DNA of 64,000 bases, from NCBI RefSeq assembly GCF_006345805.1, contig NW_021832829.1, forward strand, positions 124,001-188,000, in the 5' to 3' direction. The notes beneath the pieces are model-generated. The model ran no database searches. It was given only the letters and a program-made list of their open reading frames with translations, and was not told the DNA's origin. Within the stretch, counting starts at the first letter, position 1, and the number at the start of each line of letters is the position of its first letter. Below are positions 7,316-63,905 of this stretch, in pieces. Both the position numbers and the translations under genes were made by a program. The DNA comes from Octopus sinensis. Its lineage: Eukaryota.

Positions 7316-8404
7316 TTAGATCAATTTACGTCTGTAACTCAACAGAATGCCATAGTCAGTCATTGCCATTTGTTTGCAGAGATTATTTTTTTGGCCAAAT
7401 TGAGTGAGAGAATATCCGTAGGTCTTTCCGTTCCAGGATTCTGTGTTTTCTGTTAAAAGAGATTTGTTCATTGTGCGTGTCAAAACACATTTTTTGTACA
7501 TTTCCTCAGATTTTCCACGCAAAGAAATTAAGTCTGTCAAAAACTGGTCAATGTTCAGACGACTGAGCTTCTTTTTAAAAAGAGAAAGTGCAGCCGAATA
7601 CAAGGCGGTGTCCACGTCATTCCACTCAGTAATTTTTGACCTGAGCCGCTCTAATGACGGGGTGACTGGTTGTTGGTTCAATCTGAAGTAAATGAGGTCA
7701 GAAATATTCCACCCAGTCACTTGTTTAAATAAAACCAGCGACTCGTCAAAGTAATTTGATATCATTATTAAATCAAAGCTAGAGAGGGTTTCTCTTACAA
7801 ACACGTCCACTTGTTCTTTTGTATAGTTCTTTCTAGAGTCAAACCCGAATTCGAATGCCATCGGATTCCTGAGGAAATTGTTGTTGTGTGATTTATAAAA
7901 TTGATGAGGGTTATTTATGAAAGTCTCCAGTCCGTTCTTTGCCTTGAGTCCCAATATGTAGTAAAGATTAAAGAATTTGAAAGCTGAATCGAATTGTGCA
8001 ACTGGGTCTCTCAGAATAGTGACATAAATTGTCTCCTTTTTCATGATTTTGAAAATTTCAGTTTTGTTGAATCGAAAGTGGAAATAAAGCATATCAAAGG
8101 GCGCCGTAGATACTTCATGGACACTGGAACTGGTAAAAAACTTGAATTTATTTCCAAAAAAAGTCGATTGGAGTCCAAGTGGAACGGCAACTTTCAACTT
8201 GTGTTTGAGGGCGAATCTTTCTAATATGTTGACCACAGTGCTGCTTGCACACTTGTGAGTTTTATGCAGAACTATCTGCTTGATCACTTTTTTTTCGACT
8301 ATTTTCCCATTAGTGACAATACGGTGACAGAAATATATGAAAGCACTCAGGTATGCAACAAGTAGTAGTACTTTATAATTCCTGGGAAATTTATATCTCA
8401 TCAT
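7316..8404 (-). CDS. Galactose-3-O-sulfotransferase family protein (type II membrane), single exon, 362 aa
   Basis: N-terminal hydrophobic anchor, PAPS-binding HKTHKCASST, ILRDPVAQFDSAF and FDLIMISNYFDESLVL motifs of the GAL3ST family. The paralog cannot be assigned. Confidence 0.9.
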   Translation of the reverse strand: MMRYKFPRNYKVLLLVAYLSAFIYFCHRIVTNGKIVEKKVIKQIVLHKTHKCASSTVVNILERFALKHKLKVAVPLGLQSTFFGNKFKFFTSSSVHEVSTAPFDMLYFHFRFNKTEIFKIMKKETIYVTILRDPVAQFDSAFKFFNLYYILGLKAKNGLETFINNPHQFYKSHNNNFLRNPMAFEFGFDSRKNYTKEQVDVFVRETLSSFDLIMISNYFDESLVLFKQVTGWNISDLIYFRLNQQPVTPSLERLRSKITEWNDVDTALYSAALSLFKKKLSRLNIDQFLTDLISLRGKSEEMYKKCVLTRTMNKSLLTENTESWNGKTYGYSLTQFGQKNNLCKQMAMTDYGILLSYRRKLI

Positions 8405-14640: not shown

Positions 14641-15090
14641 ATGGTGAGAGTTAAGCGACGTTATTTTATATGTGAGTTGTACTCCACAGAGAGTAAGCTG
14701 GAGGGGGTTACTGGTGCCTCAATAAACACTGCAGTGAAGAGAATGACTAGTTTGTTGTATGGAGACTACGGTTTGGCCTGTATTGTGGGGCAACTGAAAG
14801 TGATGTACATCAATCCCTACCAGAAGATTGTGATTGTCAGAGTTGGGAGGGAATGTCAGAATATGGTAGCATCAGTTCTTCCATTTATTGCCAATATTGA
14901 GAGTGTTCCTCTTATAGTCAAGACAGTGCACGTGTCTGGAAGTATTCGTCAGTGTCGACGACATTTTACGATATATCACAATGCCCAGACTCGAAAGATG
15001 CTTTGTACAGCTACGAGTGTCGAGGAAAGACAAAATATTGTTAATTCCTTCAACCAATCCTTGACCAACCTGAATGAATTCTACACCTAA
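14641..15090 (+). CDS. POP5: RNase P/MRP subunit POP5, single exon
   Basis: MVRVKRRYFICEL N-terminus, LYGDYGLA, YINPYQKIVIVRV and VSGSIRQC match the POP5 family. Confidence 0.88.
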   Translation: MVRVKRRYFICELYSTESKLEGVTGASINTAVKRMTSLLYGDYGLACIVGQLKVMYINPYQKIVIVRVGRECQNMVASVLPFIANIESVPLIVKTVHVSGSIRQCRRHFTIYHNAQTRKMLCTATSVEERQNIVNSFNQSLTNLNEFYT

Positions 15091-22540: not shown

Positions 22541-23302
<762 letters not shown>

Positions 23303-25210: not shown

Positions 25211-28160
25211 TTATTGTTCAAATTTGTTTTTGGTAAGATCTACTTTAAACCTGAAATGGTATAGTTAGTTAACTAATTAACCTGTTAGAAAATTGAAATT
25301 ATCAATTTTTAAAGTTATTTTATAAATTTTAGAATGCCAATGCCTAGAAAACTAAATCAAAGTGAAAAAAATAAAAAGAAATAAAATAAGAAAAAGACGT
25401 ATGACACTTCTTTTGTGTTGCAGTTACACAGGAGAAAATATAAACCGTTTATAACTGAACGTACGAAGTCACCAGAGTATTAAAAAATGTGAATCTGATA
25501 GAAATCGACATTTATTATGATAATTCGTGCAGTCTGGATGACAAAAAATATTTTTGAAAATTGGTTATCTCGATTTAATGAGGAAATGAGGGAGAAAATA
25601 AGGAAAATAATACAAGTTCTTTAATTCTTTAATTCAGCTATGTGACCAAGGGATAATAACGGAATTTAAGAATCATTTCAATAACTGGATTATGAAAACG
25701 ATTGTCTATGATAAAAATCGTGTAGCACAAATAGATGAAGCAATAAAGAAAATCACAATATTGGATGCTATTTCATGTAAAAAATTGGCATGGGACGAGA
25801 TTACAAACACTTCAATACAACATTGCTTTGAAAAAACTTTGGAATATGACTGTTGGGAAAAAGAAAACACCGGAGAAAGTCTGATTAATTCGAATATTGT
25901 GGAAAATGCAATTTTAGAGAGTTTCTGGGATGATAACAGTAGTGAAAAAGAGGACCACAGCGAACAATTTCTGGAACATTTTGATGATCAATAAGTGCGT
26001 ATTCACAATGCTGCTAAATGTTATTAATCAAGAGACTCCGAAAAATGTACAGTCTGTACCAAAACATTATAATATTGGCAAATTTATCAATAAATCATTT
26101 GTATCTCTACTTATATCAATTTTTAAGTGTTAATTTTTAGCATGTAATTTCTAAATTGACTTATCTAACTATTCTTAAATAAATTAATTCTTAAAAATAT
26201 ATTACATGCTAAAAATATATTGTCATGTACCAAAACATTATAATAATTTTTGTCATGTAACAAAAGATTATAATATTTTCTAGTATTTGATGTTTTTCCC
26301 TCGAGATTTTAGTACAGCATCTACTCTTTTTGGCATTTATTCAATTAAACCTTTTATTTCTTCAATTTTAATTTCATTCCATATGATTTTCAGTTCATTT
26401 TTCAGATCCTCTATCGTTTTTATTCCACGAGCCATAACTTTTCGTTTCATTATTCCCCAAAGATTTTCGATTGGATTGAGATCAGGGGAATTAGGAGGCC
26501 ATTTCATAAGATTAATTTTTTGGTTTTGAATCCACTCAATCCTATCTTTTGCAGTGTGTGTAGGAGCATTGTCCTGTTGAAAAATGTAATTACATCCATC
26601 ATATAACTTTTGACCAGTTGAAATTAAATTTTTTTCTAATATTTCTCTGTATACTAATCCATTTACAGTTGAATCACTAATTGAAAGCGAGCTCAACCCA
26701 TTAAAACTCATCGCTCCCCACACCATAGCTCCTTTTCTGTAATGAAGCTTTTGATTTATGCATGAAGGATGAATTGTTTCATTTTTTTACGCCAAAACTA
26801 CGCACCTTTTTCACCAATTAACAGCAGAAACTTAGATTCGTCAGAAAAAATAAAACTTTGGACCACTGTTCTATAGTCCAGTTTATTTTCCCTTTAGCCA
26901 AAGCTAATCTTTGCTTCTGTTGTTTTAATGTTAGGAAGGACTTGCAAACAGGGGTTATGGAAAAAAATCCCAATTGGTTTAGACGTCTGCTTATTGTCAT
27001 TCGGCTCAAATTAATTCCGTGAGGAATAAGTTTTTCGGAAATTTCCTTAATAGAGATGAATCTATTTTCCATCAAAACTCTTTGAATAACTCTTTCTTCT
27101 CGTGAAGACGTTAATATCGGCCTTCCCTTTCCGACACGATTGTTTTTCTCGTTATTTTGCTTCCGCAACACGTTGGAAACTGATCCTTGTGAGCAATTTG
27201 TGATTTCCGCGATTTTGTTTTGACTAAGTCCAAAGGTATGGAGATTTAAAATAATTTTTTTGGTATCAAATGACAAGTCGCTTTGTCCTTCCATGTAAAT
27301 TAAATGTCACCGTCCAGACCGGCCGGGGCGCCAGATCGGTCAGGTCAATTATCTAAATACAAAACAAATATTTTTCCTACATAACATTTCATTGCAAAAA
27401 ATATTGATAATAAAAAAATAAAATCTTATTAATAAAAAAGTTCTAAAAAGTTGAAAAGATTAGCATTAATCAATGGTTTTAGTTGAACCAAAAAATTTAG
27501 TTTCAAGGAGAACAACACCTACATTTCTAAAAATGGCTCAAAGTTGCGTTTTTTTGTATCGAAGACACTGAACTTAAGTCAAAATTCATTGAAGTAGTGT
27601 ATTTGTTTATTTAAATTAGGCTCAACACAATCTTAATCATTTTGGACGTGATAAATTGGGGGTTAGGGTTAGGCGGAGAAAGTGGAAATATGATGAAGTT
27701 GAAAGTGGCGATTAAATTTTAATACGCCATGATGGGGATGCAAACCCGGGTTATAGAAAATACCCATTATACGACGAGATATCTGCACAAAAATATATTG
27801 TGAAAAATAGGGATCGAGAACTCGTAACGATAATTAATGAAAAAGATTAAAGGATACATATTAGCAGAGTAAAAAAACTTTAACTGCAAATATTCATGGG
27901 GTTCCTTCTGTGTTTTTTTTCTCGTGTCATATTTACTTAATTGTGAAATAATTGTGGCATTGTTACAAATTCGACGCGGCCGAAGGCCGCATAGGGAAAA
28001 ATATTCACATTGAATCATCCGGCCGTAGGCCGGATTGTATTTTAGAGTTTTAATGATAAAAATAGAAATTTACAACATTTTTAAAAATTAAAAATGGATT
28101 TTTCTAATAAACTTTATTGTTGAGAATTGTTTGGCTAACCTTGGTTAAAGCATTTTTAAA

Positions 28161-28556: not shown

Positions 28557-30597
28557 AACATCATCTACGATATGCGAAGATCTGTTTATCGGATACGATA
28601 CGTCTCGGACAATCTGTCGGACCTTGAGGTATCAATGAAAAAGCATTTGACACCGTATCCAATACAAAACATCTCTTCGAATATACAAATTGAAAAACTT
28701 GATAAAATTCTCAGAGAAGCTATACTGGACTTTCTCCGAAAATCTTCAATCAGGAAATACATCATGTCAAATACTAACAGAAAAACCCGGATTGACGAAT
28801 CTTTGGGAAAACTTATAAAATGGAAGGGAAACCTTGAAAAGAAGCTAAGACGATGCAGTGACCCCATAGATCGTATTCGTCTTCGGGATAAGATTCGTAC
28901 CGTGAAAATAGAGATAAATGATGTCGCAAAAAAACATTCAGACCTTGCTTGGAAGAGTCAATGCTCGAAACTGAATAAGAAAAACCTCATTTTTGGAAGG
29001 TTTTCAACAGACTGAGTAATATGGAGAACAAAGGAGAAGAGATCCGACTAAAAACAACTGAAGGAATAGATATCCCGCTCGATGAAGTTCCCTCACATCT
29101 GCGAAGTCAACTGGCAAAAGTTCAAGAGGTGGATCCGATCGACATGGTTCCGAAAGAAGTTATATGTGAGGCTCAGAGAAGTCTAAGAGCAAATTTGAGT
29201 CATACGGGACCACTGTGCAGAGACATAACGTTGGAAGAAACGTATGCCGCAATTATGAGCTGCAAGAATAATGCACCCGGCCATGACTACATTCCAATTT
29301 CTGTATTCAAACATGCTCCAAATATTCTCCTACGATACTTGACCGCACTATACAATGCAAGCTGGAGACTTGGATACGTACCGGACTCTTGGAAAAGTCA
29401 ATCGTACGTATGATTCCAAAGCTGGAAAAATAAAGGACCATGCAGAGAACTATAGGCCGATAAGCCTAATATGCTCCGTCTCTAAAATTATGGAACGGAT
29501 TGTCTTCACAAGACTTTCGAACTTCGTAGAGGAATCAGGTGCACTTGCAGTAGAGCAGTGGGGATTCCGACGAAAAAGATCCTGTGGTGATTGTTTCGGA
29601 GAACTCGAGAAAGTCATCTCGCTTAGTCTTGCTAATAATACAGCGACTATTGCTATCTGCCTCGATGTCTCAAAAGCTTTTGACAGCGTATGGCACCTGG
29701 GCCTCTTGGAAGTGTCGCCAAGAGCAAACCCGGTCTCTAAAAACGGTCAATTGGCTGAAGAGCTATTTATCAATGAGGAGGTCATAGATACGATGCGGAA
29801 ACCGTTTGTCGGAATCTGTCGATCTCAAACAAGGCTCGGTCTTGAGCCCTCTGCTTTTTAATATTTACGTTGCTGATATTCCAAAACCGAAAGATCCTAC
29901 CAGTCGTCTCATGATCTACGCGGACGACATATTAATAACGGATGCTTCGTGGAAAAAAGACATCTCGTGGAGGAAATTAAAAGGATACGTGACAAGAGTG
30001 GAAGAGTGGTGCATATCAAAAGGACTGACGCTCGCAAAAGAAAAGTGCACCGCCACTTGGATTGCAAAACAGGGAGCTAAACGAAAACCGCCGAGAAACC
30101 TCTATGGGTTTACAGTAACGGAGAACCTGAAATACCTTGGGGTTGAAGTTGGATCCAAGGGTTCTTACTTCAGATACATCGACTCGAGGAGAAGGAAATG
30201 CGCTCAAATTCTCAGGAGCATAATTCACTTCCACCTTTGCCCGGAAACGTTTTTATATGTTTATAAAACGTGCGTCGAACCATTGCTTACCTACGGGTTC
30301 GAGGGATGGTATCCTACTGCTGAAAGGGATGGCATTATCGCTAAGCTCGAAAAGACGAGGCGATATGCCATCAAATTGGCAAATGGACTCCAGTTGGACC
30401 AACCCATCCCTCAAGTGATGGAAGACGCGACGGAAACGGTTGGAAGTGTTCTTGAGAGAGCCTTTTCCTCTCGAATTAAATATAAAAAAAAAAAAAAAGG
30501 GAAACAACGAAGAAGAGGCATACGTTGTCTCATTAACTTTCTCCCTCTTTTTTCGGCTTTTCCGTTAATAAAAATTCATTCATTCATTCATTCATTT
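28557..30597 (+). mobile_element. 5'-truncated, frameshifted LINE (RT) with (TTCA)n tail
   Basis: NAPGHDYI, YRPISLICSVSKIMERIV, QWGFRRKRS, LDVSKAFDSVWH, QGSVLSPLLFNIY, YADD and LKYLGV. Tail TTCATTCATTCA at about 30575-30596. Confidence 0.9.
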
Positions 30598-32949: not shown

Positions 32950-33715
32950 TAATCGAAAGGAGAGCCAGCAGCCTGGCAGATCGCCAAACTGTTCCCCAGG
33001 ATAACGGCGATCGAGAACCGCTGAAAAAGCCAGTCCACCTCCCGAGGATCGTGAGTGCGCATGAGATTTTGGCCCCGAGCTTGTGGAGGAACTTTTCCAT
33101 CTTTAGACCAAGAGCACCCGACGACTCAACCGCTATCGGCATCACGAAAAACTCATCTAAAGGGCAGAATATTTGGATAGCTTTAAATCTTCAGCCTTCT
33201 TAGCAGTAGATTTAGTCTCCAGAGCACACTAAGTTAGATGTGAAGCAGAAAAAGTATCCCAGCAGGTTGCGTCCCATACGAGGCCTTTTCCGCCCTCAAA
33301 AAGGAAAAGGCTCATCCCATCAGGACGTTTCCCGTCATCGCCATCAAGACCCGGTGGTTCGAGGACCGAAGGAAATCCCGCCGAAATGAGGACCCTCCGT
33401 ATGATGTCATTCATAGCCGAGTGCCTCGGAAAACGTCCGGCACTTCTCCTGCACGATAAAGGATGCAGACCGAAAGGATCAACAGTGCAGCCACAACGAC
33501 ATACGTGCAGGACACATTGTCTTAGTCAGAGGCGCAGAGAGATTCCGATCCTTACCGATTCATCGTCAAGGAGAGTGCCAGATGGGGCGTTCGGGAATGC
33601 ACAAAGCCAAGGTCCACAAGCCGGGGATGCTGCCGAAAGAAGGCAAGCGCGGCGGTGTTGGTTGGACGACTCGAGCAGCAGATTGCAAGTTTGCTTGCAT
33701 CATATTCGATCCCAG
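32950..33715 (-). mobile_element. 3' fragment of a CRE/SLACS-type non-LTR retrotransposon
   Basis: TLLDDESVRIGISLRL, CRCG...HPLSC...[30 protein letters not shown] and PIAVESSG. Confidence 0.85.
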
Positions 33716-34564
33716 GCTCGTTGAGACATTCGATCTTCCGGAAAGTCAAGACCTTGTTCCTTCCAGACTTCGCTGAAATGAGCCACATTTGCCAAAAGAA
33801 AAGAGAGCTAAATATGAAAATGAGTTTTGATGAAATACAGAACTTGTTTAATAAGAATTGAGCAAGATTCGAGCCGATGTGACGCACGTGACTGGAAACC
33901 GATTTGATTATTGAAAGTTGACTAAAAAGAGAATTTCCCCCTGATCTTCTAAGATGTCGATCCCATCAAAACCTAGGCCATCTTGAAAATTCTAACACGG
34001 GGCTTACTAATTTTCAGTGCACTCATCCAAAAAATTGATTAAAGTATTCTCTGCACTTTAAAGAACAGCGAACATATTTTCGGTCCGATCATTCTATCGT
34101 CGAATGAACTAAATCTAATCTACCAGCCCCACTGAATAGACTAAACTCGTAGGATATTGGTCTGTCTAATTTGTATTTTTATATGTGAATAGTTTGCGTC
34201 GATCTTTTGACTCGAGTAATAATTCTAATTTTACCTCTAAAGAACTTATTATTATTGTAAGAACTGAATTTTATTTTGTTTGCCTAAATATAGAATTCTC
34301 AAATTAAATCAGTTATACGTGTGAATAATCGACAATTTTTTTAATTCTCGTTTCATATTTAGTCAGTTCGAGTAAACAAGTTAAAAAAATATGCGGGTTG
34401 CATTTCTTTACAATTTGGAATTTTACCTTTCATTTTATATATTAAATTAATGAAAACAAATCAATATCAAAGAAATATACTTTTGTCCCTAAAGCTTTGA
34501 CGCAATGCATCACTAAGCACCCTAATAATTATTTGACCACAAAAAATATTAAAAGTGAGTATTA

Positions 34565-37156: not shown

Positions 37157-38127
37157 ATTTTATTAAAGTTTGTTTTGATTTATTTGCTTTTGTTTTCAAC
37201 GACGAAAAAGGATTTATTCAATTTAAATCAGTCCGCTGTGCGAGACTAAATGTTGAGGATGATATTAAGGTGTGTTTTTATCAAAGGATTCAGAGATATA
37301 CAAATTATTCGTCAATAAACAACATTATCTATTAATTGAATAATTTTTTTCTTAGTTATTTTAAACTCGATAAGGGATACGCGAATTGAGGCTGACTTAT
37401 ATGAAGAACTTCTCAAATTCTTCAGACCAATTTCCTAGAGCAGATCCACTTGATCAATATTGAAGAATTTTTAAAGAAATATTGCAGAATTTTTAAGGCA
37501 AAGATGCTCTATAAAAATTATTACTGATATGCCATAAATCGAGGACGAATTCTTAATAAAACAGACAAAGACGAAAAATCAAAAAAGAAAGCTAATTATT
37601 TTACAGTATTAGGCAATACGAGGTCTTTTTCGATTTCTTGCAATTTTTTGACTTAATCTTAGGAAAAATTTATTTACAAAGTGATAACAAGTGACAAGTA
37701 GCGTTTCCCTACATTACTGCCAATCTCTGTTCTATTATTCTTGAAATCTCTAAATTTCTAATAAAGTATGAATAACGATGTCAATTTTCATAAATGGATC
37801 AATTTTGTCATTCTTTAATGCTTTATCTGGCTTTACTTTTCTCTAGACATGTTTTTGCTGATTCTAATATTACTGAAAAAGTTTCTATTTAGTATACAAA
37901 TATATTGTAGAAAAGGCTCGTCGTTTTAATTAAAGATGTACTAACAGATTTTCTACAGATTTCTGGTAATTTTCTCTAATGAAATTATTTTTGTAGAATC
38001 AGAGTTGGGTTTTGACATTGATTTTGACAAATTCAAGGCATTGATCATTTTGTATAATTCCTTTAGAAAATGTTACAATCTAATACCAATATTGATTCAG
38101 GTGAAATTGATAATAATTATTCTAGAC
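37157..38127 (+). repeat. Dispersed repeat, inverted relative to 61448-62411
   Basis: Reverse-complement alignment by eye: 37632-38127 is identical to 61448-61943; the remainder is diverged with indels. Confidence 0.93.
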
Positions 38128-38287: not shown

Positions 38288-38530
38288 CTATAAGTTGAAC
38301 AGGGAAGGGGACAACACAGAACCCTGCGGTACCCCATTTGGAAGATAGCGTTGTTTTGAACAGTGGTCCATAAGGAAGACGTATCCCGATAAGAAGTTTT
38401 CAAGCCAGGATTTGAAGTTTGAGTTTAGGTCTGTCTTTAAAATTTTGTTGATGAGTTTTTGTTGAGTCCAGTGGTTTAAAACTATGTTGAGTATGGCAAG
38501 TTGGCAAATGTTTGGATATTCGGGCAAGGA
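38288..38530 (-). mobile_element. LINE RT fragment related to the 40.5-43.4 kb element
   Basis: WLENFLSG and PNGVPQGSVLSPSLFNL. Confidence 0.7.
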
Positions 38531-38717
38531 TTAATCTTTCAAGGATTTTAGCTAGGGTAAAATAACTAATTGGTTAATTTGATTTTATTTAGTTTTTATA
38601 ACTAGTAATATTAAAGAAATTTCAAGTTTACAAAATCAAAATTGTGTCTGTGCTTCTTGTGTGATTTAATTGAATTATATAGATTAATTTTCGAATCTTT
38701 TACCAAATTATTAAAAG

Positions 38718-39253: not shown

Positions 39254-40512
39254 TAAAAAAATATTAACTTTTAGTTTTGTGTAACAATTATGACTTAATT
39301 GATCAATGATGCTTTAATTTTTCCATAGTCCTAATTTTTATTTATTTATCGCTAGCTTTTAAACGAATCTGATATTTAAACTTTGAAAATATCAATGAAC
39401 TGAAAATATTAAATTGATATAAATACAATTAGATATAAAACTTAAAGATTAAAACGACTTTAAAATATATAAATGAAATTCTTTAATAAAATTTTTAACA
39501 TTTAAACTTGTTCGCACAATCGCAGTCCTGAGTCACACACTTGGCTAGAGTTCCTGCATTTTTCAAAAGTCGTGTTTTCTGTAGTTTTGTAAATATCTTG
39601 GAACGGCATTATTCCGCAATTTTTGCGGAATATTGTTAGCGACCAGTAATAGCTTCTTGTTTTTAATAGTATCATAGTTTTTGTCTCATTGTCCACTTTC
39701 AAATTAGTAATTTATAGATTCGTTTATGTATCAAAATAATCATATTATTTTTATAGAATGCAATTTTTGGAAATAAAATCGAAGAATCAGACCAATCAAC
39801 AATCTTCCTCAAAAAATTACTAGCAATATCAATATCCAGTATAACATACAACCGGGCGATTTTCCCCGAATCCGCCTATAATAATCATACCATTGACGAT
39901 CTGAACTTGAAGATTCTCAGTGAGAAATCAGATTGCCTGAGTGCTCAGAAAATCATCAAATGGCTGAGAGGGGCTTTGACGCTATAAACAGAAAATTTGT
40001 ATTTTTTAATTATATAATTTAGCTGAGGGCGATTGTTTTGGAGGTAACATTTGATAGCAATAAACTTAATTAAATAGTTTTTAAACGACGAAAATAGATC
40101 AGAAGTATTTTCCCACTGACCTGTTATTTTTAGAAAATTATTGAAAAAATACACATTAAAATTTTTTATTTTAATGAAAATAAATTAGACATTTACAAGT
40201 TAGTTTTAGTAAATATATTTTATAGTTAAAACAATCGAATACAAACTTTATTTTCTGAAATGGACAATAAATCCGCAACATTTAAACCTGTTCGCACAAT
40301 CGCAGTCCTGACTCACACACTTGGGCCACTTCCGTCTGAAATAAAAATAAACATGAAACTATTTTATTATAACGAAAGTGAATATATTATTCGAATATTT
40401 TGGTTACTCCTGTTGACTATGAACACAAGGAATTATTCCAACAGCTGAACCTCTTAATAAATTCACTGAAGATTGCATCTCAGTTAACGTCGGCTCAGTT
40501 CAGACGGTTTTT

Positions 40513-43406
40513 ATTATTATTATTATTATTAGAACCAAGATCACCGTCCAAAACATAAAACTAATTAATCAGGTGATCCCGGCTTCTCTGAGGAGGGTCC
40601 TCAACTTTGCCCGGTGCTCCTCCCTTGTCCCGGCACAATTTCTGTGAGGGCGCGGTGGTGGTGTTTTTGGCCCTGTAGCCCCGAGGTTTCTTCTCAAGAT
40701 TTCATTAAATGGGGCGATGAGTAGATGTTTTTCGGTCCCTGCAGTGCTTTTCGGAAGCGATCTTGAGTTTTCTCGATTTCAGCGCGGTTCGTTCCACTGA
40801 TAAACCCTCCCCACGCCTCACAAGCATAGCTAAGGGAGGGTTCGATGAATTGCCGGTATAAGGCTTGTCGTGCGGGGAAGCTGATACACTGTCTGCATTT
40901 ACGAAGAAACACTTTCAAGATGTTCAGTTTCTTCATGCACCTCGTAGTAATATTATCGACTTGTTGAGAAAAACACATATGACTGTCGTAAGTCACCCCG
41001 AGGATTTTCTGAGATTTTTGAAACGGGATTTCCATGTTATTTAGGTACAGGTTCACCACCGTTTTCCCAAGCTTCCTTGCTGAGGTCATAAGCGTGGTAA
41101 CCGATTTTTCCGAACTCGTTGGTAGTCGGTTTAGCGAGAGCCAACTTTCGAGATTGTTAAGGTGGTTCTGCAGTTTTGTACTCGCCGTGTTCACCTCACG
41201 GCTCCGGGTAGCAATTACGATATCGTCAGCGTATGATAAAATGATTGAGTCTTTGTCGTTTGGTAGCGGAAGATCCGATAAGAATAAGTTGAACAGGGCT
41301 GGTGAAAGGGGGGAGCCTTGAGGGACCCCGTTTGGAAAGTATCGAGACATCGATCTTGTATTGTTTTGTTGGATTCTGCCTCTTCGGCCGCTGAGGAAGT
41401 TAGCTAGCCACATTTTCAGTCTTGGGTGAATTCCACTAAGGTATATTTTCCTGGTCAGTATTTTTCTGGGGACGGAGTCAAAAGCCTTATGGATATCCAC
41501 TGAGCACATAACCGTTTTTTGGTTATACGGTTTGGTAGATAGTCCATCTGAGATGAAGTTCGTCAGAGTGACAAGGTGCGAGGTGGTTGATTTACCACAT
41601 TTAAATCCATGTTGAAAGTCCAAATCCGGGAGATATTGTTTGATGTGGTTGAGTATAAGTTTTTCCAGAACTTTGGAAAGGACGCAGAGGAAAGATATTG
41701 GCCTGTAGGACGCCGGGTTGTCTTTTGGTCTCCCTGGTTTCAGAATAGGACGAATGTGTGCCATTTTCCATAGTGTGGGTATTGCGTTGTTGTTTATAGA
41801 AAAGTTGTAAATTTGACAGAGAGCTGATATTGCCACCGGTCCTAGGTTTTTCACCAGGATAGTAGGAATTCCGTCGGGTCCACAAGAGCCAGTGCTTCTT
41901 AAATTTCTGATGGTCTGAGACACCTCCTCTTGAGTGAGGATAATCATGTCCCGACATCTTCGAGGTTTCAACGACTTCAAGCGTGGTCCATCGTATTTCC
42001 TGTGGGGGATGTTGCTGATCCCAGCGTAGAACTTTATCAGTTTGTTGGTGAAGGGAACCGCATTATCCTCACCCGCTTCAAATCTCTCAGGGTTTGTGAA
42101 TCTTCCTAGGGATGCCCATACTTTTGTTAGTGGGACCTCCGCATTTAATCCTCTGGCGAACTTTTCGGCCCTCCCGTACCGTTTGTCTTTTGCAGATTGT
42201 TTTATGACTTTATTCAGTAGTCTGATCCGATGCCGGTTATCTTTTGTAAGGTGAGAGCGACCTTTCAATGAGTTCCGTTCCTCGATTAGAGGTAGAATCC
42301 CCGACGGAAATTTTCTTACTGGTTTTGGGTAAATTTTCCTCATTTTTAAGAATAATTTTCTTCCAATCAAAATTGTTCGGTAGAAGTGCTTGAGGGCGTT
42401 GTCGATGGAGTCGAAATCATGTACATCAAAGTTAACCAGTGCTTTGTCAATGGAATAGGCAAAATTGACCCAATCTGCGTGCTTGTAGTCGTATTTCAGG
42501 TTGTGGAGCCCCTTTCTAATGGGCAATTTGACTTGGACTTTTATAATTAGCGGATTGTGATCGCTCCGTAGATCGTAGGTAACGCCCCATTTGACCAGAG
42601 GTGCGAGGTTAGAGGAGCAGAGGGTCAGATCGGGGGAGGTGGGCTTGTCCTTGGTGTTGTAAGGAGTTCTTGTGTGCAGTGAGGGGTTGTTCAGGATTAC
42701 AAGGTTGTCCAATTGCTCGAGAATAGACTTTCCTCGGGAGTCAGCGGTTTGTGACTTTAACCAATGCGGGTGTTTTGCATTCAAGTCCCCAAAAATAATT
42801 AGATTATCGTGATTATCAAACGGGCGTAGATCTGTGATAAAATGTTTCGGGCACGATCCTGTTGGCGGGATATACATATTGCAAATCACTATGTTTCCAA
42901 GTGAGGTGGGGATAGTAATTGCAGAAAATTCCAGACTCGTGTTTTTGCTTCCTTTAGAGCTGAGCGAAGGGGAGCTCTCCTGGTAAGTGATTCCCTTCTT
43001 AATAAGTGTTATGAGACCGCCTCCACGGCCTGAGGGTCTGTCCAGGCGTTCCATGTGGTAGTTGGGGAAACGTGGAGACCTCGAAGAAGGATTGAGTTTT
43101 GTTTCTTGGAGTACACATATGTCGATATCATGCTTGATCAAAAAAGAGTTTAGTTCTGTTGATTTTCCAGTAACTCCGTTGATGTTCAGTTGGAGAATTG
43201 ATATATGCCTCTTTGGGCCGGGATTAGGCTCCACATCCCCACTGATAGTGAGAAGGGCAAAACGGGAGAGTGAGGTCCACAGAGAAGGCCGCCCCGGACT
43301 GACGATAGTCGCGAGGGGATGAGGGAATGATTCTTTTTCTAATCCAATAACTGGATTTTTGCGCCACCACAAAAGGCGAATCACACGACGCATGGGTTTT
43401 GGGTGC
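40513..43406 (-). mobile_element. APE-RT LINE (I/Ingi/Jockey-like) with N-terminal 2A peptide, (AAT)6 tail and 9-bp TSD
   Basis: Uninterrupted ORF 43393-40694 with QLNINGV, LQETKL, GDLNAKH, SDH, YRPIS, DIHKAFDSV, GVPQGSPLSP and YADD. TSD ACGGTTTTT at 40504-40512 and 43407-43415. Confidence 0.95.
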
Positions 43407-43680
43407 ACGGTTTTTGTTTGTTTTTAAATTTTAGCCGTGGCATGGGTTTTTTATTTTTTTAAGTTTTTCTGTAAAATCGACCGCTCTTGAAACATTAAGC
43501 TCTGATTTAATTTCACTTGATTCTCCTGCCTCTTCTGTAAATGACACGATATGTTAGCACCAATCTTTTTTATAAAGTGACGGGAGAATGTGTGGAGAGT
43601 CCAAATCTCGGTGTAACCTGTCCTTGTGGTTTTCAAGAAGTTATTATTCTTTTACTGACGACTAATGATAATTTGTAATA

Positions 43681-46420
43681 AAAATAAACATGCCCTTCCC
43701 GTCTCTGATGCAGAGGATTTTCTGCGATATCTGTCCGCTTTGCGACGGTGCAGGTACATTCCCGTCAGGATTCCGAAGGCAGTCAGGTTACTTGCTGCAG
43801 AGAGTCTTGCCACCTTGATTGGAAATGCCACGAAGAAACACTCCGACGCCCTTTCGTGGGCAAAACTATTCCTCTTTCCCGTCTACGCTTTGGGCGTCCC
43901 GATACAGCAACAAAGGGATGGGCAATCTCTTGCTAAAGTTTTGAAAGCGCAGATCGGTGAATTCATGTCCAATTTCGAGTCCGTCCTCTGCCCCCCTACC
44001 GAAGGGACGCACAAAGTTGAAATAAGGCCTTCAAAGGCATCTGAGGCCGAAAGGATACGGCGGCTGGTACGGACAAAACTCATGGAAGGGGACGTAAAGG
44101 CCGCTGTACGAACCATATCCTCGGACCTGGGCACCCTTCCATACAGCACTGCTACTGTTTCCGCATTGAAGGCGAAACATCCCAGCGCCCCTGAAGATTT
44201 TCGTGAATTCCACCTCCCTAATGTCATGCCACTAGTAGCCTCGGCCCCGGACGTCTCCGATAGCCTGAAATCCTTCCGCCGCAGCAGCTCTGGCGGTGTG
44301 GATGGCCTAAGGCCTGGGCATGTTCGTGATTTGATATGCCGGCTCTCAGGGGAAAACAATACTACCTTGCTCAAAAAGATCGTCGAACTCTCTAACAAGA
44401 TTCTGTCCGGCGACTTATGCTCTTTTGCCCGTGAACTGATCTTCTCCTCATGTTTGACGGCCCTAAAGAAGGCGGATGGCGGAGTTCGCCCCATTGCTAT
44501 CGGAAACATTTTCCGAAGGATTGCTTCCAAGATAGCAAGCAAGGCAGGCTCTGGGGAACTTCTATCGTACTTCGTACCAACACAGCTCGGAGTTGGTGTC
44601 CGAGGAGGCGCTGAGGCCGGGATCCATGCTCTACGTGAGTTTGTTTTTTCTTCCACGGATTCCCAACGAATTCTGGCCAAGATCGACTTAAAGAATGCAT
44701 TCAATTCTGTTAGAAGCGACTGTATTCTTGAAGCTTGCGCCAAAAAAATTCCGCACATCCTACCGATTGTCAATTTGGCATACTCCAAGCCTTCCGCGCT
44801 TGTATTCGGAACAACAATACTTGATTCTGCCAATGGAGTTCAACAAGGTGACCCTCTAGGTTCTCTTTTATTCTCCCTCGCAATTCACCAAACAACGAGA
44901 TCGTGTAAAAATGATCTTAACATGTGGTATTTGGATGATGGAGTAATTGGAGGAACCCCCGAAGGCATCTTGGAAACGCTGAAGTCTCTTGTTTTTAATT
45001 TTGGAGCGCTTGGGCTTGAATTCAACTGCGGCAAATGCGAAATTGTGAATGTCAACACGGACGAACTTTCCTTTCGTAAGTGGATGACCGAATTCAACAA
45101 ACTGCTACCTGGATGCACCTTCCCCCTCAAAGAAGACTTGATTTTTCTTGGATCTCCTATTTTTGAAAGTGGTATCAAAGCTGTTATGAAGGCTAAAATT
45201 TCGGAATTTTCCTTTCTCTCTGAAAAATTACGTTGTGTGGATAGCCACATTGGGCTCTTTTTAATGAGGAACTGTCTATCTATTCCGAAGTTAACATATT
45301 TTTTGGGGACGGCCCAATGCTATCAGGAAACAGATCTTCTCGAAGACTATTCTGAGCATATGAGAGCTTGCACAGAGGACATCCTCAACGTTAGCTTCGA
45401 TACGCAGTCGTGGAGACAGGCGACTCTTCCAATTTCCCTGGGAGGGATCGGCTTGATCACCCCGGCAGATTCAGCGCACGGCGCATATTTTTCCTCAGTA
45501 CTCTCGTCCAGAGATATGATCGACACTGTTCTTTCTCAAATAAACGAACAGAGGAAATCATTTGCTGTGGATGATTGCGTCGCCGTATGGGAAAAGCTGG
45601 GATTGCCATTGCCATCTGATGTGACCTGCCAATCGGAGTGGACGTCGAAAATCCACGCCAATACGTTTTCATGCCTAAAGGAAACCATGGACCATAGAAG
45701 GTTGGCTTGTTTACAAGCGGGCAGCCAGCCCCTAAGCGGCGCGTGGCTAAACTGTTACCCTTGTAATACAACTGGCTGCCTTCTTAATGATGAAGCTGTA
45801 AGAATTGGAGTTTGTCTGCGCCTCGGTCTACGCGTTTATGAAAAACCATAATGCCGGTGCGGCGTGTGGACTGACGAGTTTGGATATCACTCCCTCTCAT
45901 GTCGAAACGGAATTGGACGTTTCTCACGGCATTCCGAACTGAACCAGATCATCTGTCGATCTCTTCGAACTGCGGGATTCCACACACAATTGGAACCTGC
46001 AGGGATTTTCGTAGAGGACGGCAGAAGACCCGATGGGATGATCACATTTCCATTTCAAAGGGGAAAGTGTCTGGTTTGGGATGTCACGTGTGTGAACTCC
46101 TTTTCTAATCAGAATATCAAATTATGCATCGAGAATCCTGGAGCCCCGTCTGAACGGGCTGAGAAGAGAAAAGCTGAGAAATACGCTGGAATTGGGAATG
46201 GGAGAGTGTTTGTCCCCCTGGCTGTTGAGACGTCAGGAATACAGGGGCCTTCTACTCGGACCCTACTCCAGCGCATTGCCTCATTAATCGAAAGGGTTAC
46301 CGGCGACCCGTGTGAGCACCGGTATTTAATCGAAAGAATATCTATAGCAATAGTCAGAGGCAATACTCTGGCTATCTGCCAATGACCATTTTTCTTTTGA
46401 TATAAAACAATTAAACAATA
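43681..46420 (+). mobile_element. CRE/SLACS-type non-LTR retrotransposon, probably 5'-truncated, 11-bp TSD
   Basis: SSGGVDGLRPGH, GGVRPIAIG, QLGVGVRGGAEA, DLKNAFNSV, GVQQGDPLG, YLDDG, CRCG..H..SC..RH and RPDG REL endonuclease. One in-frame TAA at 45849-45851. TSD AATTTGTAATA at 43670-43680 and 46421-46431. Confidence 0.95.
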
Positions 46421-47309
46421 AATTTGTAATATTTGTAAACATTGGCAATTTGTTTCTCAATTATTGAAGAAAAATAAGCCCCATCGATCCACGTGTGCTA
46501 TAATTGTGCCAAAGTTATCTTAAGATCTTTAATTTTATAAAAAAAACTCTCTCGGATGTCAAAGTGTGATTTTTTAATGATTTTCTAAGATTTGAAAAAG
46601 TATGAATGCACCAACCGATCTCTTGGTTCATTAAGTGCAAAGGCTGTTAAAGTTGATATAAAGTACCATCGCTTAGGATGTCTGTCTATTTCGACGTGAT
46701 CTAATGGCGACAACTGAAACGCTAGAAATAGATTCAAATGTTGGCGACAACATTAGTGAGAGACTTGGAGTGAATCTGCGACAGCATCAGTCTTGGTTAA
46801 AAAACTAGAAAAGTGTCAATTTATAACAAAAAATGATCCACGGGCTAAAAAGTAAATATGAGAGTAATGGAAATATAGAGGGTGGATGATGGTTTGTAAA
46901 TTGAAATTGGCTAAAGGACTTTTCGATTATTTTCCAATTCACTCTCAATGTATTTTTCAAGAAAAAAGAATTTCTTCATCGGTAAAATGTCATGATATCC
47001 TCAATATTTCTATTTCTAAGTGTTCTAGTGTTTATCAAAGTCATTTCTATAATTTTGTTATTGTTTTACTATAAAACCGTTTTATTGTGACAAATCCTAA
47101 AATTATATTTCATTTTAAGATGATGTATGGTTTCCATCAATTTGATTTTTTAGCCATATCGGGCACGGGGCCTGGATTTTGTTCAATGTCTCCGAAAAGA
47201 AGAAGGGCGAGTTTGATGAGCAAAAAAATCCTTGGCTGGAAGCAACGGCTTGCTTTACTGCCCCGACGTCACTTGAGGAATCCGATCAGACAAAGGGGGT
47301 AGTTGTTGG

Positions 47310-47760
47310 TCTTTTCGTAGTTAAAAACTATCATTTGTCACCACAGATGTGAAAAGGAACATAGATGACTTCTCAGCTGATCCAGGTTAAATTGGATCTT
47401 TTCAGTAACCTTTTGGATATCCTTATCCCGTGAAGCCAATACAATGTCATCCGTATATGACAGTAAAACATAATTGTCCTTTACGAGGGACGAAAGATCT
47501 TCCAGGAAAAGATTGAATAGAGCAGGAGATAAGGGAGAAGCTTAAAGTACTCTGTTGGAGAGAAGACGTGACATAGACTTTAGTCCTCCAAAACACCCTA
47601 TCTCTTCGTCCACTTTAGAAAGTTGGTGATCCATAGTTTGAGTTTGTGTGGTAATTCTGTTTGAAATATTATACACAGCATTTTCTCCGACCTTCGAGAA
47701 TTTTTTCCATACAATAAACATCGGCAATCGCTCAGTAAGATCAACCTGGATGACCAAAAG
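47310..47760 (-). mobile_element. LINE RT fragment, homologous to 60430-60690 (+)
   Basis: KLWITNFL, SPLSPALFNLFL and SYTDDIVL. Confidence 0.75.
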
Positions 47761-60429: not shown

Positions 60430-60690
60430 TGAGAAATCATCGAGACATTTAAAGACAATATGCTCTGTTCTGTCACTGTACACATAGTTTCTGACTGTGT
60501 ATCGAAGAAGATTCTGTGAAGAAAATATTTCAAGCAGAATTATCACGGAAACTCGAACTGTGGATCACCAACTTTCTAAGTGGACGAAGAGATAGGGTGT
60601 GTTTCGGAGGACTGAACTATGTGTCAGGTCTTCTTTACAACGGAGTACTTCACGGAGTACTTCAAGGTTCTCCTTTACGGCTTCAATGAG
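60430..60690 (+). mobile_element. LINE RT fragment
   Basis: KLELWITNFLSGRRDRV...NGVL..QGSP, with DNA similarity to 47520-47700 (reverse complement). Confidence 0.7.
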
Positions 60691-61447: not shown

Positions 61448-62411
61448 GTCTAGAATAATTATTATCAATTTCACCTGAATCAATATTGGTATTAGATTGT
61501 AACATTTTCTAAAGGAATTATACAAAATGATCAATGCCTTGAATTTGTCAAAATCAATGTCAAAACCCAACTCTGATTCTACAAAAATAATTTCATTAGA
61601 GAAAATTACCAGAAATCTGTAGAAAATCTGTTAGTACATCTTTAATTAAAACGACGAGCCTTTTCTACAATATATTTGTATACTAAATAGAAACTTTTTC
61701 AGTAATATTAGAATCAGCAAAAACATGTCTAGAGAAAAGTAAAGCCAGATAAAGCATTAAAGAATGACAAAATTGATCCATTTATGAAAATTGACATCGT
61801 TATTCATACTTTATTAGAAATTTAGAGATTTCAAGAATAATAGAACAGAGATTGGCAGTAATGTAGGGAAACGCTACTTGTCACTTGTTATCACTTTGTA
61901 AATAAATTTTTCCTAAGATTAAGTCAAAAAATTGCAAGAAATCAAAAAAGATCTCGCATTGCCTAATACTGTCAAATAATTAGCTTTCTTTTTTTGATTT
62001 TTCGCCTTTGGCTGTTTTATTAAGAATTCGTTCTCGATTTATGGCATATCAGTAATAATTTTTATAAAGCATCTTTGCCTTAAAAATTCTTCAATATTTC
62101 CTTAAAATTTTTTCAATATGATCAAGTTGGTTTGCTCTAGGAAACCGGCCTGAAGAAATTGAGAAGTTCTTATAAGTCAGCCTCAATTCGCGTATCCCTT
62201 ATCAAGTTTAAAATAACTAAGGAAAAAAATTATTCAATTAATAGATAATGTTGTTTATCGAGGAATAATCTTTATATCTCTGAATCCTTTGATAAAAAGC
62301 ATACTCAACATTTAGTCTTTAGTCTCGCACAACGGACTGATTTTAAATTGATTAAAATTCTTTTTCGCAGACATTGTTTATTAGTAAATCAAAACAAGCT
62401 TAAATAAAATT
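61448..62411 (-). repeat. Second copy of the dispersed repeat; probably extends to about 60900
   Basis: Reverse complement of 37157-38127; retains the empty TTCTAGAC site. Confidence 0.93.
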
Positions 62412-62475: not shown

Positions 62476-63905
62476 AATGCGACGTTCAATTTTGACACTT
62501 TTTGCATCAATTTTGACAATGCAATAAGCAATATTGGCATTTTTTACATCGGCTTTGACAATGCGATATTAAATTTTGATACTTTTTGCATCAATTTTGA
62601 CAATGCAATAAGCAATATTGACATTTTTTACATCGGTTTTGACAATGCAATATTCAATTTTGACACTTTTTAGATCAATTTTGACAAATATTTTTATAAC
62701 GAACACACATAAGGACTTTTCTATGCGGCTAAATCAAGATGAGAGTTAATAAAGACAATTTATTAATCAGGTCAGGTTAATGGAATCCCAATCGTACAAT
62801 TCGCAATAATTTTTTCTGCATTTCTGTAAAAATTCCGTATTTTCTCGCGAGTTAGATTTGTCATAGAATATTCTAAGGCATTTTGTAATAATAGTGCTCG
62901 AAATTCCGTCAGCGTTCCATTTCCTGCTGCATGAACATCGTTATGAGGATTATTGTGATTGGATAAATATGTCTTAATCCCAGCCCTGATAATCGAAAAG
63001 CAGCCTTCGCATGGATTTAGCTGCGGAGAATATGGTGCATCAAATCTTATAATTGTATGTTCTACTCTCACGCCTTCAAAATTTCCTTGTTTTTTTTATA
63101 TATTGGAGCATTATCCATATAAATAATAATTTCCTCTCCAGCTAAACTGTCAGATAATGCCGTCATAAAATTGCAAAATTTCGATTTTATAGATCCAATG
63201 TGTGATTCAAATCTCACAATTGTTCCATTGTCATCAATTGCCAAAATAACGTTAAGATTCACTCCTTTGCTTCCCCTTACTGGAACTATCGCACGTGATC
63301 CTGTAAAGGATCGGCCGAATTTTTTTAACGTAAAAAGATTAAAATTTGTTTCGTCCAAATGTATTTTTCTATTTGTATTACGTTGATAATCCAATGAAAA
63401 TATTTTTCTTTTTTCTATATTTTCCGGACTATTCCTAGAAATTGGTTCTCTTCGCAGCATTTTGTAGGTAATCAATCGCCCATCAAATCGGTTATATATT
63501 GTCGCAATACAAACTTTATTATTTACCCATTTTCCTAATTCCTTCAATGTTATCGATGGATTATTCTCAATTGTTTCAATTATCAAATTCATATCATCAT
63601 CCGTAAGTTTTATCGTAGCATCCCTTCTACCTCCACGTTTACAAAGATAGGGATTTCCACTGTTTACAATGGCTATAGCTGTTGTCCTCTTGACACCAAG
63701 ATCGCGAGCAAGCTGTATATAATCGCCGCCCTCTTCATCCTTATTTATAAGTGCTCTTCTTGTAGCTTCTAACACTCTTGAATTTTTTCTTGACATAAAA
63801 TTCGTACAGGGACGGCGAATCAGAAAATATAAAATAAATGACAAATCGGAAAAAGTCAAAATTGATGATGCAAAAAGTGTCAAAATTGAATGTCGCATTG
63901 TCAAA
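62476..63905 (-). mobile_element. IS630/Tc1-type transposon with one frameshift and subterminal repeat arrays
   Basis: CDS 63796-62772: HTH, HLDETNF, YMDNAPI and YSPQLNPCE, with a frameshift in an A8 run. 84-bp tandem units at 62476-62687 have an inverted partial copy at 63855-63905. True TIR ends were not pinned down. Confidence 0.85.

Follow-up and report, generated by a model that had tools for sequence, protein, structure and literature searches.

The 64,000-nucleotide stretch analyzed here (the window, from whose first letter all positions are counted) corresponds by exact look-ups to VCDQ01000828.1:124001-188000, part of a 651,711-bp contig of assembly GCA_006345805.1 that is filed as Octopus sinensis. 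As judged by sequence homology, its plus strand between 39757 and 47302 encodes, in pieces, a complete meiotic HORMAD protein with a HORMA domain, a chromatin-binding region (CBR) composed of a PHD finger and a winged helix-turn-helix (wHTH), and a C-terminal closure motif. The locus is a pseudogene of the HORMAD family rather than a working member, and an open frame for the protein is absent. We put at roughly 0.85 the probability that it is a unitary, intron-bearing and non-retro-copied pseudogene of the HORMAD1/Hop1 family, residing in a genome with the 24-27 nt introns typical of Dicyema. Two non-LTR retrotransposons, hereafter elements 1 and 2, lie within its boundaries, and an original prediction made from the sequence alone had proposed that they broke a HORMAD gene of the Hop1 type.

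The identity of the gene is carried by several comparisons, the main ones using a translation in which the pieces were joined with an X at every lesion and no residue edited. The Pfam HORMA profile (PF02301) matches a rough join with an E-value of 1e-30 and the splice-aware join with 3.2e-38 over its full length (1-209/209), and the nearest relatives are HORMAD1/2 and not Mad2 or Rev7, with a bird HORMAD2 giving 50% identity over 72 residues in tblastn (39763-39978). The exact translation of exon 1, compared with 1.84 billion representative proteins, retrieved 266 hits, the best of them 48-57% identical, and those bearing names are invertebrate HORMAD1-like proteins (Pecten, Apostichopus, Tubulanus, Sepia, Argonauta, Schistosoma, Limulus, Nymphon and Oratosquilla). 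From these hits, 150 HORMADs picked by the exon 1 translation alone, and thus blind to the downstream sequence, were run by tblastn against the locus, where they matched PHD and wHTH pieces in collinear order:

43595-43639 (+): ESPNLGVTCPCGFQE
46422-46448 (+): ICNICKHWQ
46445-46513 (+): AICFSIIEEK*APSIHVCYNCAK, up to 59% identity
46683-46778 (+): CLFRRDLMATTETLEIDSNVGDNISERLGVNL, 47% identity
46775 onward (+): SATASVLVKKLEKCQFITK

A hidden Markov model (HMM) of 42 full-length homologs, searched against all six frames of the 64 kb, hits this locus only, with four collinear matches (5e-31, 4e-11, 4e-5 and 0.22). When the 155-residue PHD-wHTH join was compared with structures in the Protein Data Bank (PDB), the animal Hop1 CBRs 9myp_A (8.2e-22, residues 22-164) and 9mug_A (1.9e-16) came first and generic PHD fingers followed at only ~1e-5; one alignment covers both the PHD and the wHTH of 9myp_A, a match of sequence homology only. 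Excision of the two elements followed by HORMA, PHD and wHTH comparison thus bears out the proposal of a meiotic HORMAD with a Hop1-type PHD-wHTH. The Pfam PHD_5 profile scores 5e-4, below its cut-off, as it similarly does on an intact homolog (P0068, from Logan SRR32918511). We considered P0068, the top full-length hit and 57% identical in exon 1, as a possible dicyemid ortholog and rejected it, as elsewhere it is no closer than other invertebrate proteins. Finally, 11 invertebrate HORMADs align with the joined translation in unbroken collinear order, starting at the first HORMA strand and reaching the C-terminus, (E)GFxxYF motif included, at 28-35% identity, and the mollusc, echinoderm, nemertean and arthropod homologs retrieved here also carry a PHD-wHTH CBR.

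The gene model was built with a purpose-written protein-to-DNA aligner that tolerates frameshifts and stops alongside codon matches and accepts GT-AG introns in the range 17-120 nt, applied after excision of both elements, and its output was then curated by hand. The half encoding the HORMA domain reads as follows:

39757-39975 (+): exon 1a, N-terminus of the HORMA domain (NAIFGNK...KWLRGA); 50% identity to bird HORMAD2 over 72 aa, HMM 5e-31
39975-39998 (+): exon 1b (FDAINRKF), reached via a one-base frameshift in the T run 39973-39976
39999-40022 (+): intron 1, 24 nt, GT..AG; splice-aware alignment
40023-40070 (+): exon 2 (LRAIVLEVTFDSNKLN); splice-aware alignment
40071-40133 (+): decayed intron 2, 63 nt, starting TAAATAG and ending TTTTTAG, a GTAAAT donor minus its G
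40134-40198 (+): exon 3 (KIIEKIHIKIFYFNENKLDIY); tblastn and splice-aware alignment
40199-40225 (+): intron 3, 27 nt, GT..AG, phase 2; splice-aware alignment
40226-40376 (+): exon 4 (..NNRIQTLFSEMDNKSATFKPVRTIAVLTHTLGPLPSEIKINMKLFYYNE); HMM E 4e-11, in-frame TAA at 40227-40229
40378-40403 (+): decayed intron 4, 26 nt, GTGAAT...TTTTGG, with acceptor GG (40402-40403) and not AG
40404-40506 (+): exon 5 (TPVDYEHKELFQ / AEPLNKFTEDCISVNVGSVQT), with a frameshift within 40424-40443
40507-40512 (GTTTTT) plus 43416-43434 (GTTTGTTTTTAAATTTTAG, 19 nt) (+): intron 5, 25 nt before element 1; splice-aware alignment of the excised sequence
40513-43406 (-): element 1, a non-LTR retrotransposon with an apurinic/apyrimidinic endonuclease (APE-type), antisense to the gene; Pfam RVT_1 2e-36, Exo_endo_phos_2 1e-15
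43435-43552 (+): exon 6, end of the HORMA domain (PWHGFF..., H207 nearly invariant) and a short linker

Across the gene, six canonical tiny GT-AG introns coincide exactly with the junctions of conserved segments, and several apparent stops fall within such introns of 24-27 nt. The frameshift at 39973-39976 (GCT/TTG) separates WLRGA from FDAINRKF, and no intron is possible between exons 1a and 1b because the flanking conserved segments overlap by one base. Exon 1a has no in-frame ATG, the sole one nearby (39759) being off frame by one base. Exons 2 and 3 join in a gapless alignment with homologs (NKLNKIIEKIHIKIFY versus NDLNSIIESYTFKFSY), and we infer that the donor of intron 2 was lost by deletion. 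With the intron 4 block removed, YYNE-ITPVDYE aligns to YYDEVTPEDYE, and splicing of exons 5 and 6 yields VGSVQT/PWH, in agreement with the nearly invariant VGxVxTPFH of the family. As a separate observation, 48 nt of exon 4 (40277-40324, coding ATFKPVRTIAVLTHTLG) recur with 96% identity at 39497-39544, 213 nt upstream of exon 1 and with no similarity on either flank, and look like a small templated patch or conversion tract.

The remaining half comprises the CBR and the C-terminus:

43553-43577 (+): intron 6, 25 nt, GT..AG, phase 1; curated alignment
43578-43639 (+): exon 7a, start of the PHD finger (TGECVESPNLGVTCPCGFQE); tblastn and CBR structure match
43640-43658 (+): 19-nt frameshifting insert within the PHD finger, with no AG for splicing
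43659-43680 (+): PHD middle, left half (RLMIICN), resuming at 46432-46448 (ICKHWQ)
43681-46420 (+): element 2, a non-LTR retrotransposon with reverse transcriptase (RT), CCHC knuckle and PD..D motif; Pfam RVT_1 3e-13
46432-46513 (+): PHD middle, right half, and PHD second half (ICKHWQ / AICFSIIEEK*APSIHVCYNCAK); up to 59% identity, E 4e-5
46514-46600 (+): putative intron 7, 87 nt, GT..AG, across which CAK and YECTNRSLGSLSAKAVK join gaplessly against homologs
46601-46651 (+): exon between PHD and wHTH (YECTNRSLGSLSAKAVK); splice-aware alignment
46652-46676 (+): intron 8, 25 nt, GT..AG; splice-aware alignment
46677-46851 (+): winged helix (DVCLFRRDLMATTETLEIDSNVGDNISERLGVN / ATASVLVKKLEKCQFITKNDPRAK); 47% identity to Pecten, E 0.002
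46852-46878 (+): intron 9, 27 nt, GTAAAT..ATAG, phase 2, containing three apparent stop codons
46879-47056 (+): exon with the conserved (E)GFxxYF motif (LAKGLFDYF) and a linker; splice-aware alignment
47057-47119 (+): putative intron 10, 63 nt, GT..AG, holding the only stop of the frame; a matter of the model, the linker not being conserved
47120-47302 (+): last exon, FDFLAIS (FEISDSQE in homologs), closure motif and ~22 extra residues, with stop TAG at 47300-47302

The PHD finger begins with TCPCG (43616-43630), after which homologs read CPCGxNEDDGLMI with no counterpart of the 19-nt insert. Removal of 43681-46431 lets MIICN (43665-43679) run on as ICKHWQ from 46432. A deletion of ~7 nt at 46445-46448 eliminates the zinc-ligand His of WQH, and the in-frame TAA at 46475-46477 stands where homologs have Glu or Asp. 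With HVCYNC at 46490-46507, seven of the eight zinc ligands are still encoded (CPC, CxxC, the C of AICF, and CxxC). In the winged helix, ISERLGVN and ATASVLVKKLEK (together at ~46752-46815) are set apart by a single-base frameshift at 46776-46778. The last exon holds KRRRASLMSKKIL (47195-47233), which aligns with the homologs' C-terminal consensus KRRKASxxSKxIxV and is predicted to bind a HORMA domain, in keeping with the closure-motif-like segment proposed initially. The candidate introns 46514-46600 and 47057-47119 take out the remaining stops of their regions, and a suspected frameshift near 46625 and suspected stops in 46630-46680 and 46853-46870 were dismissed as lesions since introns 46514-46600, 46652-46676 and 46852-46878 explain them. 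All motif positions of the original prediction (TCPCG, MIICN/ICKHWQ, HVCYNC and ISERLGVN onward) proved correct.

The part order of HORMA, linker, PHD, wHTH, (E)GFxxYF and closure motif is that of animal Hop1 proteins with a CBR, such as those of Schistosoma mansoni and of Patiria miniata (PDB 9mug and 9myp; PMC12365614; Milano et al., bioRxiv 10.1101/2023.03.04.531117), and the likeness extends to the seven retained zinc ligands, to the recognition-helix region RLGVxxxxAxxLxxKLEK, and to the absence of an HTH-C extension. The locus differs from them in that the gene is not intact, its PHD exon being split by a retrotransposon and its WQH zinc-ligand His deleted, in a HORMA-PHD linker of ~35 aa versus ~100 in homologs, and in a frame that continues ~22 residues beyond the usual end. 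Vertebrate HORMAD1 and HORMAD2 share a HORMA domain 34-50% identical to the one encoded here and a basic C-terminal closure motif of the same type, but lack the PHD-wHTH region (PMC12365614). The original prediction was right that an ancestral architecture had been kept, but this is unremarkable, as PHD-wHTH CBRs (structures 9mug and 9myp) have been described across many Holozoa, Schistosoma among them (PMC12365614). The locus is in this sense an ordinary, legible pseudogene of a well-described family, the PHD-wHTH being already known in flatworms, echinoderms and other animals.

The lesions comprise five frameshifting indels, two in-frame TAA codons, two ruined splice sites, the lack of an in-frame start, and element 2. 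We regard as firm those at 39973-39976, 40227-40229 (TAA), 40424-40443, 43640-43658, 46445-46448, 46475-46477 (TAA) and 46776-46778, together with element 2, and as probable the missing in-frame ATG, the lack of GT at intron 2 (40071) and the GG in place of AG at intron 4 (40402-40403). Both single-base frameshifts put forward originally are therefore real (39973-39976 and 46776-46778), with some eight further lesions beyond them, and the claim that this copy is dead holds on the strength of ~ten lesions plus the retrotransposon within an exon. TAA does act as a stop codon in this genome, as it ends the genes for a Gal-3-O-sulfotransferase (Gal3ST) and for Pop5 in the same window. A ciliate-type code with TAA read as Gln, suggested by the fact that all three in-frame stops are TAA, was rejected on these two genes and on 900-codon frames without TAA. 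A processed pseudogene was likewise rejected, the introns being retained.

Both retrotransposons are flanked by perfect target-site duplications (TSDs), as had been noted, with 9/9 and 11/11 bases. Element 1 sits inside the 25-nt intron 5 (GTTTTT/GTTTGTTTTTAAATTTTAG), which it inflates to 2.9 kb, and its 9-bp TSD, ACGGTTTTT, occupies 40504-40512 and 43407-43415. It displays the features of an APE-type long interspersed element (LINE), namely an AP endonuclease and an RT in one open reading frame (ORF) of 904 aa without a stop (40694-43408, minus strand), a simple-repeat 3' tail ((TAA)6 at 40513-40530), and the TSD; its best PDB match is LINE-1 ORF2p (1.5e-18). Just upstream of the AP endonuclease, at about residues 57-65 of the frame, lies a 2A-like "ribosome-skipping" motif, GDVEPNPGP (43213-43236, minus strand). 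APE-type LINEs with N-terminal 2A-like peptides reportedly occur in several clades in marine invertebrates, as Odon et al. are said to have described in 2013. Element 1 resembles these LINEs in placing DVEPNPGP upstream of an AP endonuclease and RT and in its trinucleotide-repeat tail, with a TSD that begins with an A run in element orientation, and differs in that this copy seems 5'-truncated and is without ORF1. Related RT fragments (29-50% amino acid identity) occur at 38291-38573 (-), 47362-47669 (-), 29216-30309 (+) and 60516-60677 (+), two of which closely flank the pseudogene, the one at 47362 starting ~60 nt past the HORMAD stop.

Element 2 is the only one to interrupt coding sequence, as it splits the C-N / I-C codons at the second zinc-ligand pair, and its 11-bp TSD, AATTTGTAATA, is found at 43670-43680 and 46421-46431. 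Its frame of 906 codons (43665-46385, plus strand) has a single in-frame TAA at 45849-45851, and its best PDB matches are R2 proteins, at a weak 2e-6. The translation contains CRCG..H...C and RPDG...(13 residues)...DVT, a nuclease motif seen by eye, and this succession of RT, CCHC knuckle and putative PD-(D/E)xK nuclease places it among the restriction-like-endonuclease LINEs of the R2/NeSL/CRE group. Unlike members of that group, it has no visible N-terminal zinc finger or Myb domain and lies in a single-copy gene, not in a repeated RNA gene. Element 2 reads in frame with five codons of the HORMAD PHD exon (MIICN), and because the frames are continuous, public gene calls list a 728-aa chimera (43665-45851, plus strand) that starts from the HORMAD methionine. 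Its 5' junction at 43674-43692 (TGTAATAAAAATAAACATG) matches exon 4 at 40337-40355 (TGAAATAAAAATAAACATG) in 18/19 bases; the first 12 nt of the element could thus have been picked up as filler from a neighboring sequence, or AT-rich DNA could have produced the match by chance. A related RT fragment is present at 32973-33768 (-), 44-57% identical, and no further DNA-level copies of element 1 or element 2 occur within the window.

Excision of the elements rejoins coding sequence, as originally proposed, in the case of element 2 (MIICN/ICKHWQ), but that of element 1 rejoins a 25-nt intron and not an exon. Nor do the insertions seem to have killed the gene. Both elements are young, with perfect TSDs and nearly intact frames, and the host gene has ~ten lesions in 1.5 kb versus one lesion in 5.4 kb across the two elements. 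Since a lesion-riddled gene surrounds nearly intact elements with perfect TSDs, the gene was most likely decaying before they inserted, and the insertions were late arrivals in a dead gene and not the cause of its death. Of the proposed breaking by two retrotransposons, the splitting of an exon by element 2 therefore stands, while element 1 is intronic and the gene looks dead before either insertion. These data are consistent with a model where the ancestral gene would have encoded a HORMA domain, a short linker, an animal Hop1-type PHD-wHTH CBR and a C-terminal closure motif able to bind the safety belt of the HORMA domain, with a function presumed by analogy with the known roles of Hop1/HORMAD1, and where inactivation would have come first and both elements would have landed in neutral DNA.

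Several points weigh against this reading. The missing start, the nature of the defects at 40071 and 40402, and the introns 46514-46600 and 47057-47119 hinge on how the gene is modeled; a canonical 66-nt GT-AG block at 40378-40443 would join YYNE in frame to EPLNKF and thereby bypass two lesions, but this splice loses the conserved VTPxDYE and the block is probably a coincidence. The order of decay before insertion is drawn from lesion densities and is not dated. Each lesion, moreover, rests on one assembly, as an allelic contig, VCDQ01006449.1 (49.7 kb), which copies window positions 1-24,500 at 99.4-99.6% identity, stops at ~24.5 kb, ~15 kb short of the HORMAD gene. The gene could accordingly be imagined intact in life, its lesions being consensus errors in a low-coverage contaminant contig. 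The frameshift at 39973-39976 does lie in a T run, a typical site of long-read error, and parasite DNA might be covered thinly in the octopus assembly, which we take to be a long-read one. However, two TAA substitutions, a 7-nt deletion, a 19-nt insert and an exonic 2.7-kb element with its 11-bp TSD are not consensus errors, the neighboring 2.7-kb element frames have no frameshift, and the Gal3ST, Pop5 and polyubiquitin genes of the same window are intact. With no frameshift in 5.4 kb of element frame, at least five indels in 1.5 kb would arise with a probability of ~0.002 at the 95% upper bound of the error rate, and given this and the several lesions of another type, we consider assembly error highly improbable.

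A second haplotype with an intact, functional HORMAD, possibly with empty insertion sites, would make the present sequence merely a disrupted allele. The two haplotigs covering the left part of the window (99.4-99.6% identical) lend this some credence, as does the frequent polymorphism of young retrotransposon insertions, and the element insertions themselves may be polymorphic. At the haplotype divergence observed (~0.5% substitutions and ~0.4 gaps per kb), however, about one indel is expected per 1.5 kb of coding sequence, against five frameshifts, two nonsense codons and two splice-site defects, and this alternative to a fully decayed gene is improbable.

The contig is most likely DNA of a dicyemid kidney parasite contaminating the octopus assembly, as we infer from its 24-27 nt introns, its GC and repeat content, a HORMAD that is not cephalopod-like and a Gal3ST without cephalopod relative. 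The HORMAD introns measure 24, 27, 25, 25, 25 and 27 nt, plus the decayed one of 26 nt, and fit the uniform ~26 nt of Dicyema, in which introns average 26.2 +/- 1.9 nt (PMC2222250); no animals other than dicyemids and myxozoans are known to have introns of 24-27 nt (PMC13644364). Dicyema japonicum has been collected from O. sinensis kidneys, with a genome of 36.7% GC and 49% repeats (PMC6736024), which the window resembles in GC (~36%) and repeat content. In exon 1, identity to the Sepia and Argonauta HORMAD1 proteins reaches only 46-49%, which brings them no closer than echinoderm or vertebrate proteins. The Gal3ST is 100% identical to an annotated Octopus sinensis protein and its next relative only 32%, with no cephalopod among the relatives listed in the protein database. 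That the sequence belongs instead to the octopus host would agree with its deposition as Octopus sinensis in a contig of 651 kb, and a GC content of ~36% suits octopus and dicyemid alike, but the introns (PMC13644364, PMC2222250), the recovery of D. japonicum with its 36.7% GC and 49% repeats from the kidneys of this very host (PMC6736024), a HORMAD that is no nearer to cephalopod HORMADs than to echinoderm ones, and the Gal3ST without cephalopod ortholog in the database make a host origin very improbable. When P0010, Pop5 and the element 2 ORF were looked up exactly, identical records came only from two "Octopus sinensis" contigs, and exact look-ups with the Gal3ST and element 1 ORFs found no match for the locus in a second assembly. 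With a dicyemid source preferred, the species assignment of "galactosylceramide sulfotransferase-like [Octopus sinensis]" and of other proteins from both contigs is probably wrong.

The window has further content outside the pseudogene:

7316-8404 (-): intact single-exon Gal3ST
14743-15090 (+): Pop5/Rpp14
22589-23302 (+): three-unit polyubiquitin, with units ~90% identical at the DNA level
26818-27294 (-): Tc1/mariner-type transposase piece, HTH_Tnp_Tc3_2 match
63068-63904 (-): Tc1/mariner-type transposase piece, DDE_3 match
37203-38127 and 61448-62367: a ~930-bp segment present twice in inverted orientation at 94.8% identity, presumably another repeat family
3486-3968 (-): 160-aa ORF with a weak Pfam Parvo_NS1 match (E 0.004, below cut-off)

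Whether the pseudogene matters for meiosis depends on what other HORMAD copies the genome holds. The locus may well be a dead duplicate, with a functional HORMAD paralog elsewhere and meiosis unaffected, an account that is compatible with the pseudogene reading and that we somewhat favor. Because the life cycle of dicyemids includes sexual reproduction in a hermaphroditic gonad (PMC6736024, PMC10636606), one would by default expect a functional axis protein, and the 48-nt exon 4 copy (39497-39544, 96%) shows local duplication activity. Against it, neither the 1.84 billion representatives nor word-indexed searches yield a protein that exceeds 57% identity in exon 1, a weak point as the searched libraries probably hold no correctly spliced dicyemid gene models. 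A literature search for a survey of dicyemid meiotic genes found none. The converse, that this is the only meiotic HORMAD of a dicyemid, so that the axis HORMAD would have been lost recently and meiosis remodeled, we regard as unlikely.

Parasite contamination is probable for the 651-kb contig and for at least one allelic contig of lesser length, together with the proteins predicted from them, and this affects users of the public octopus annotation. For dicyemids, the pseudogene would mean that it was the axis protein with a CBR that was passed down to their lineage, and its interest hinges almost wholly on the number of HORMAD copies in the dicyemid genome. In the event that no intact copy exists, it would record that an animal whose sexual cycle is peculiar has recently lost a core gene of meiosis. 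Were this the only locus, a self-fertilizing and extremely reduced sexual animal would do without HORMAD-dependent control of both DNA double-strand-break formation and synapsis, and its meiosis would have been remodeled, for example into an achiasmate or otherwise axis-independent form.

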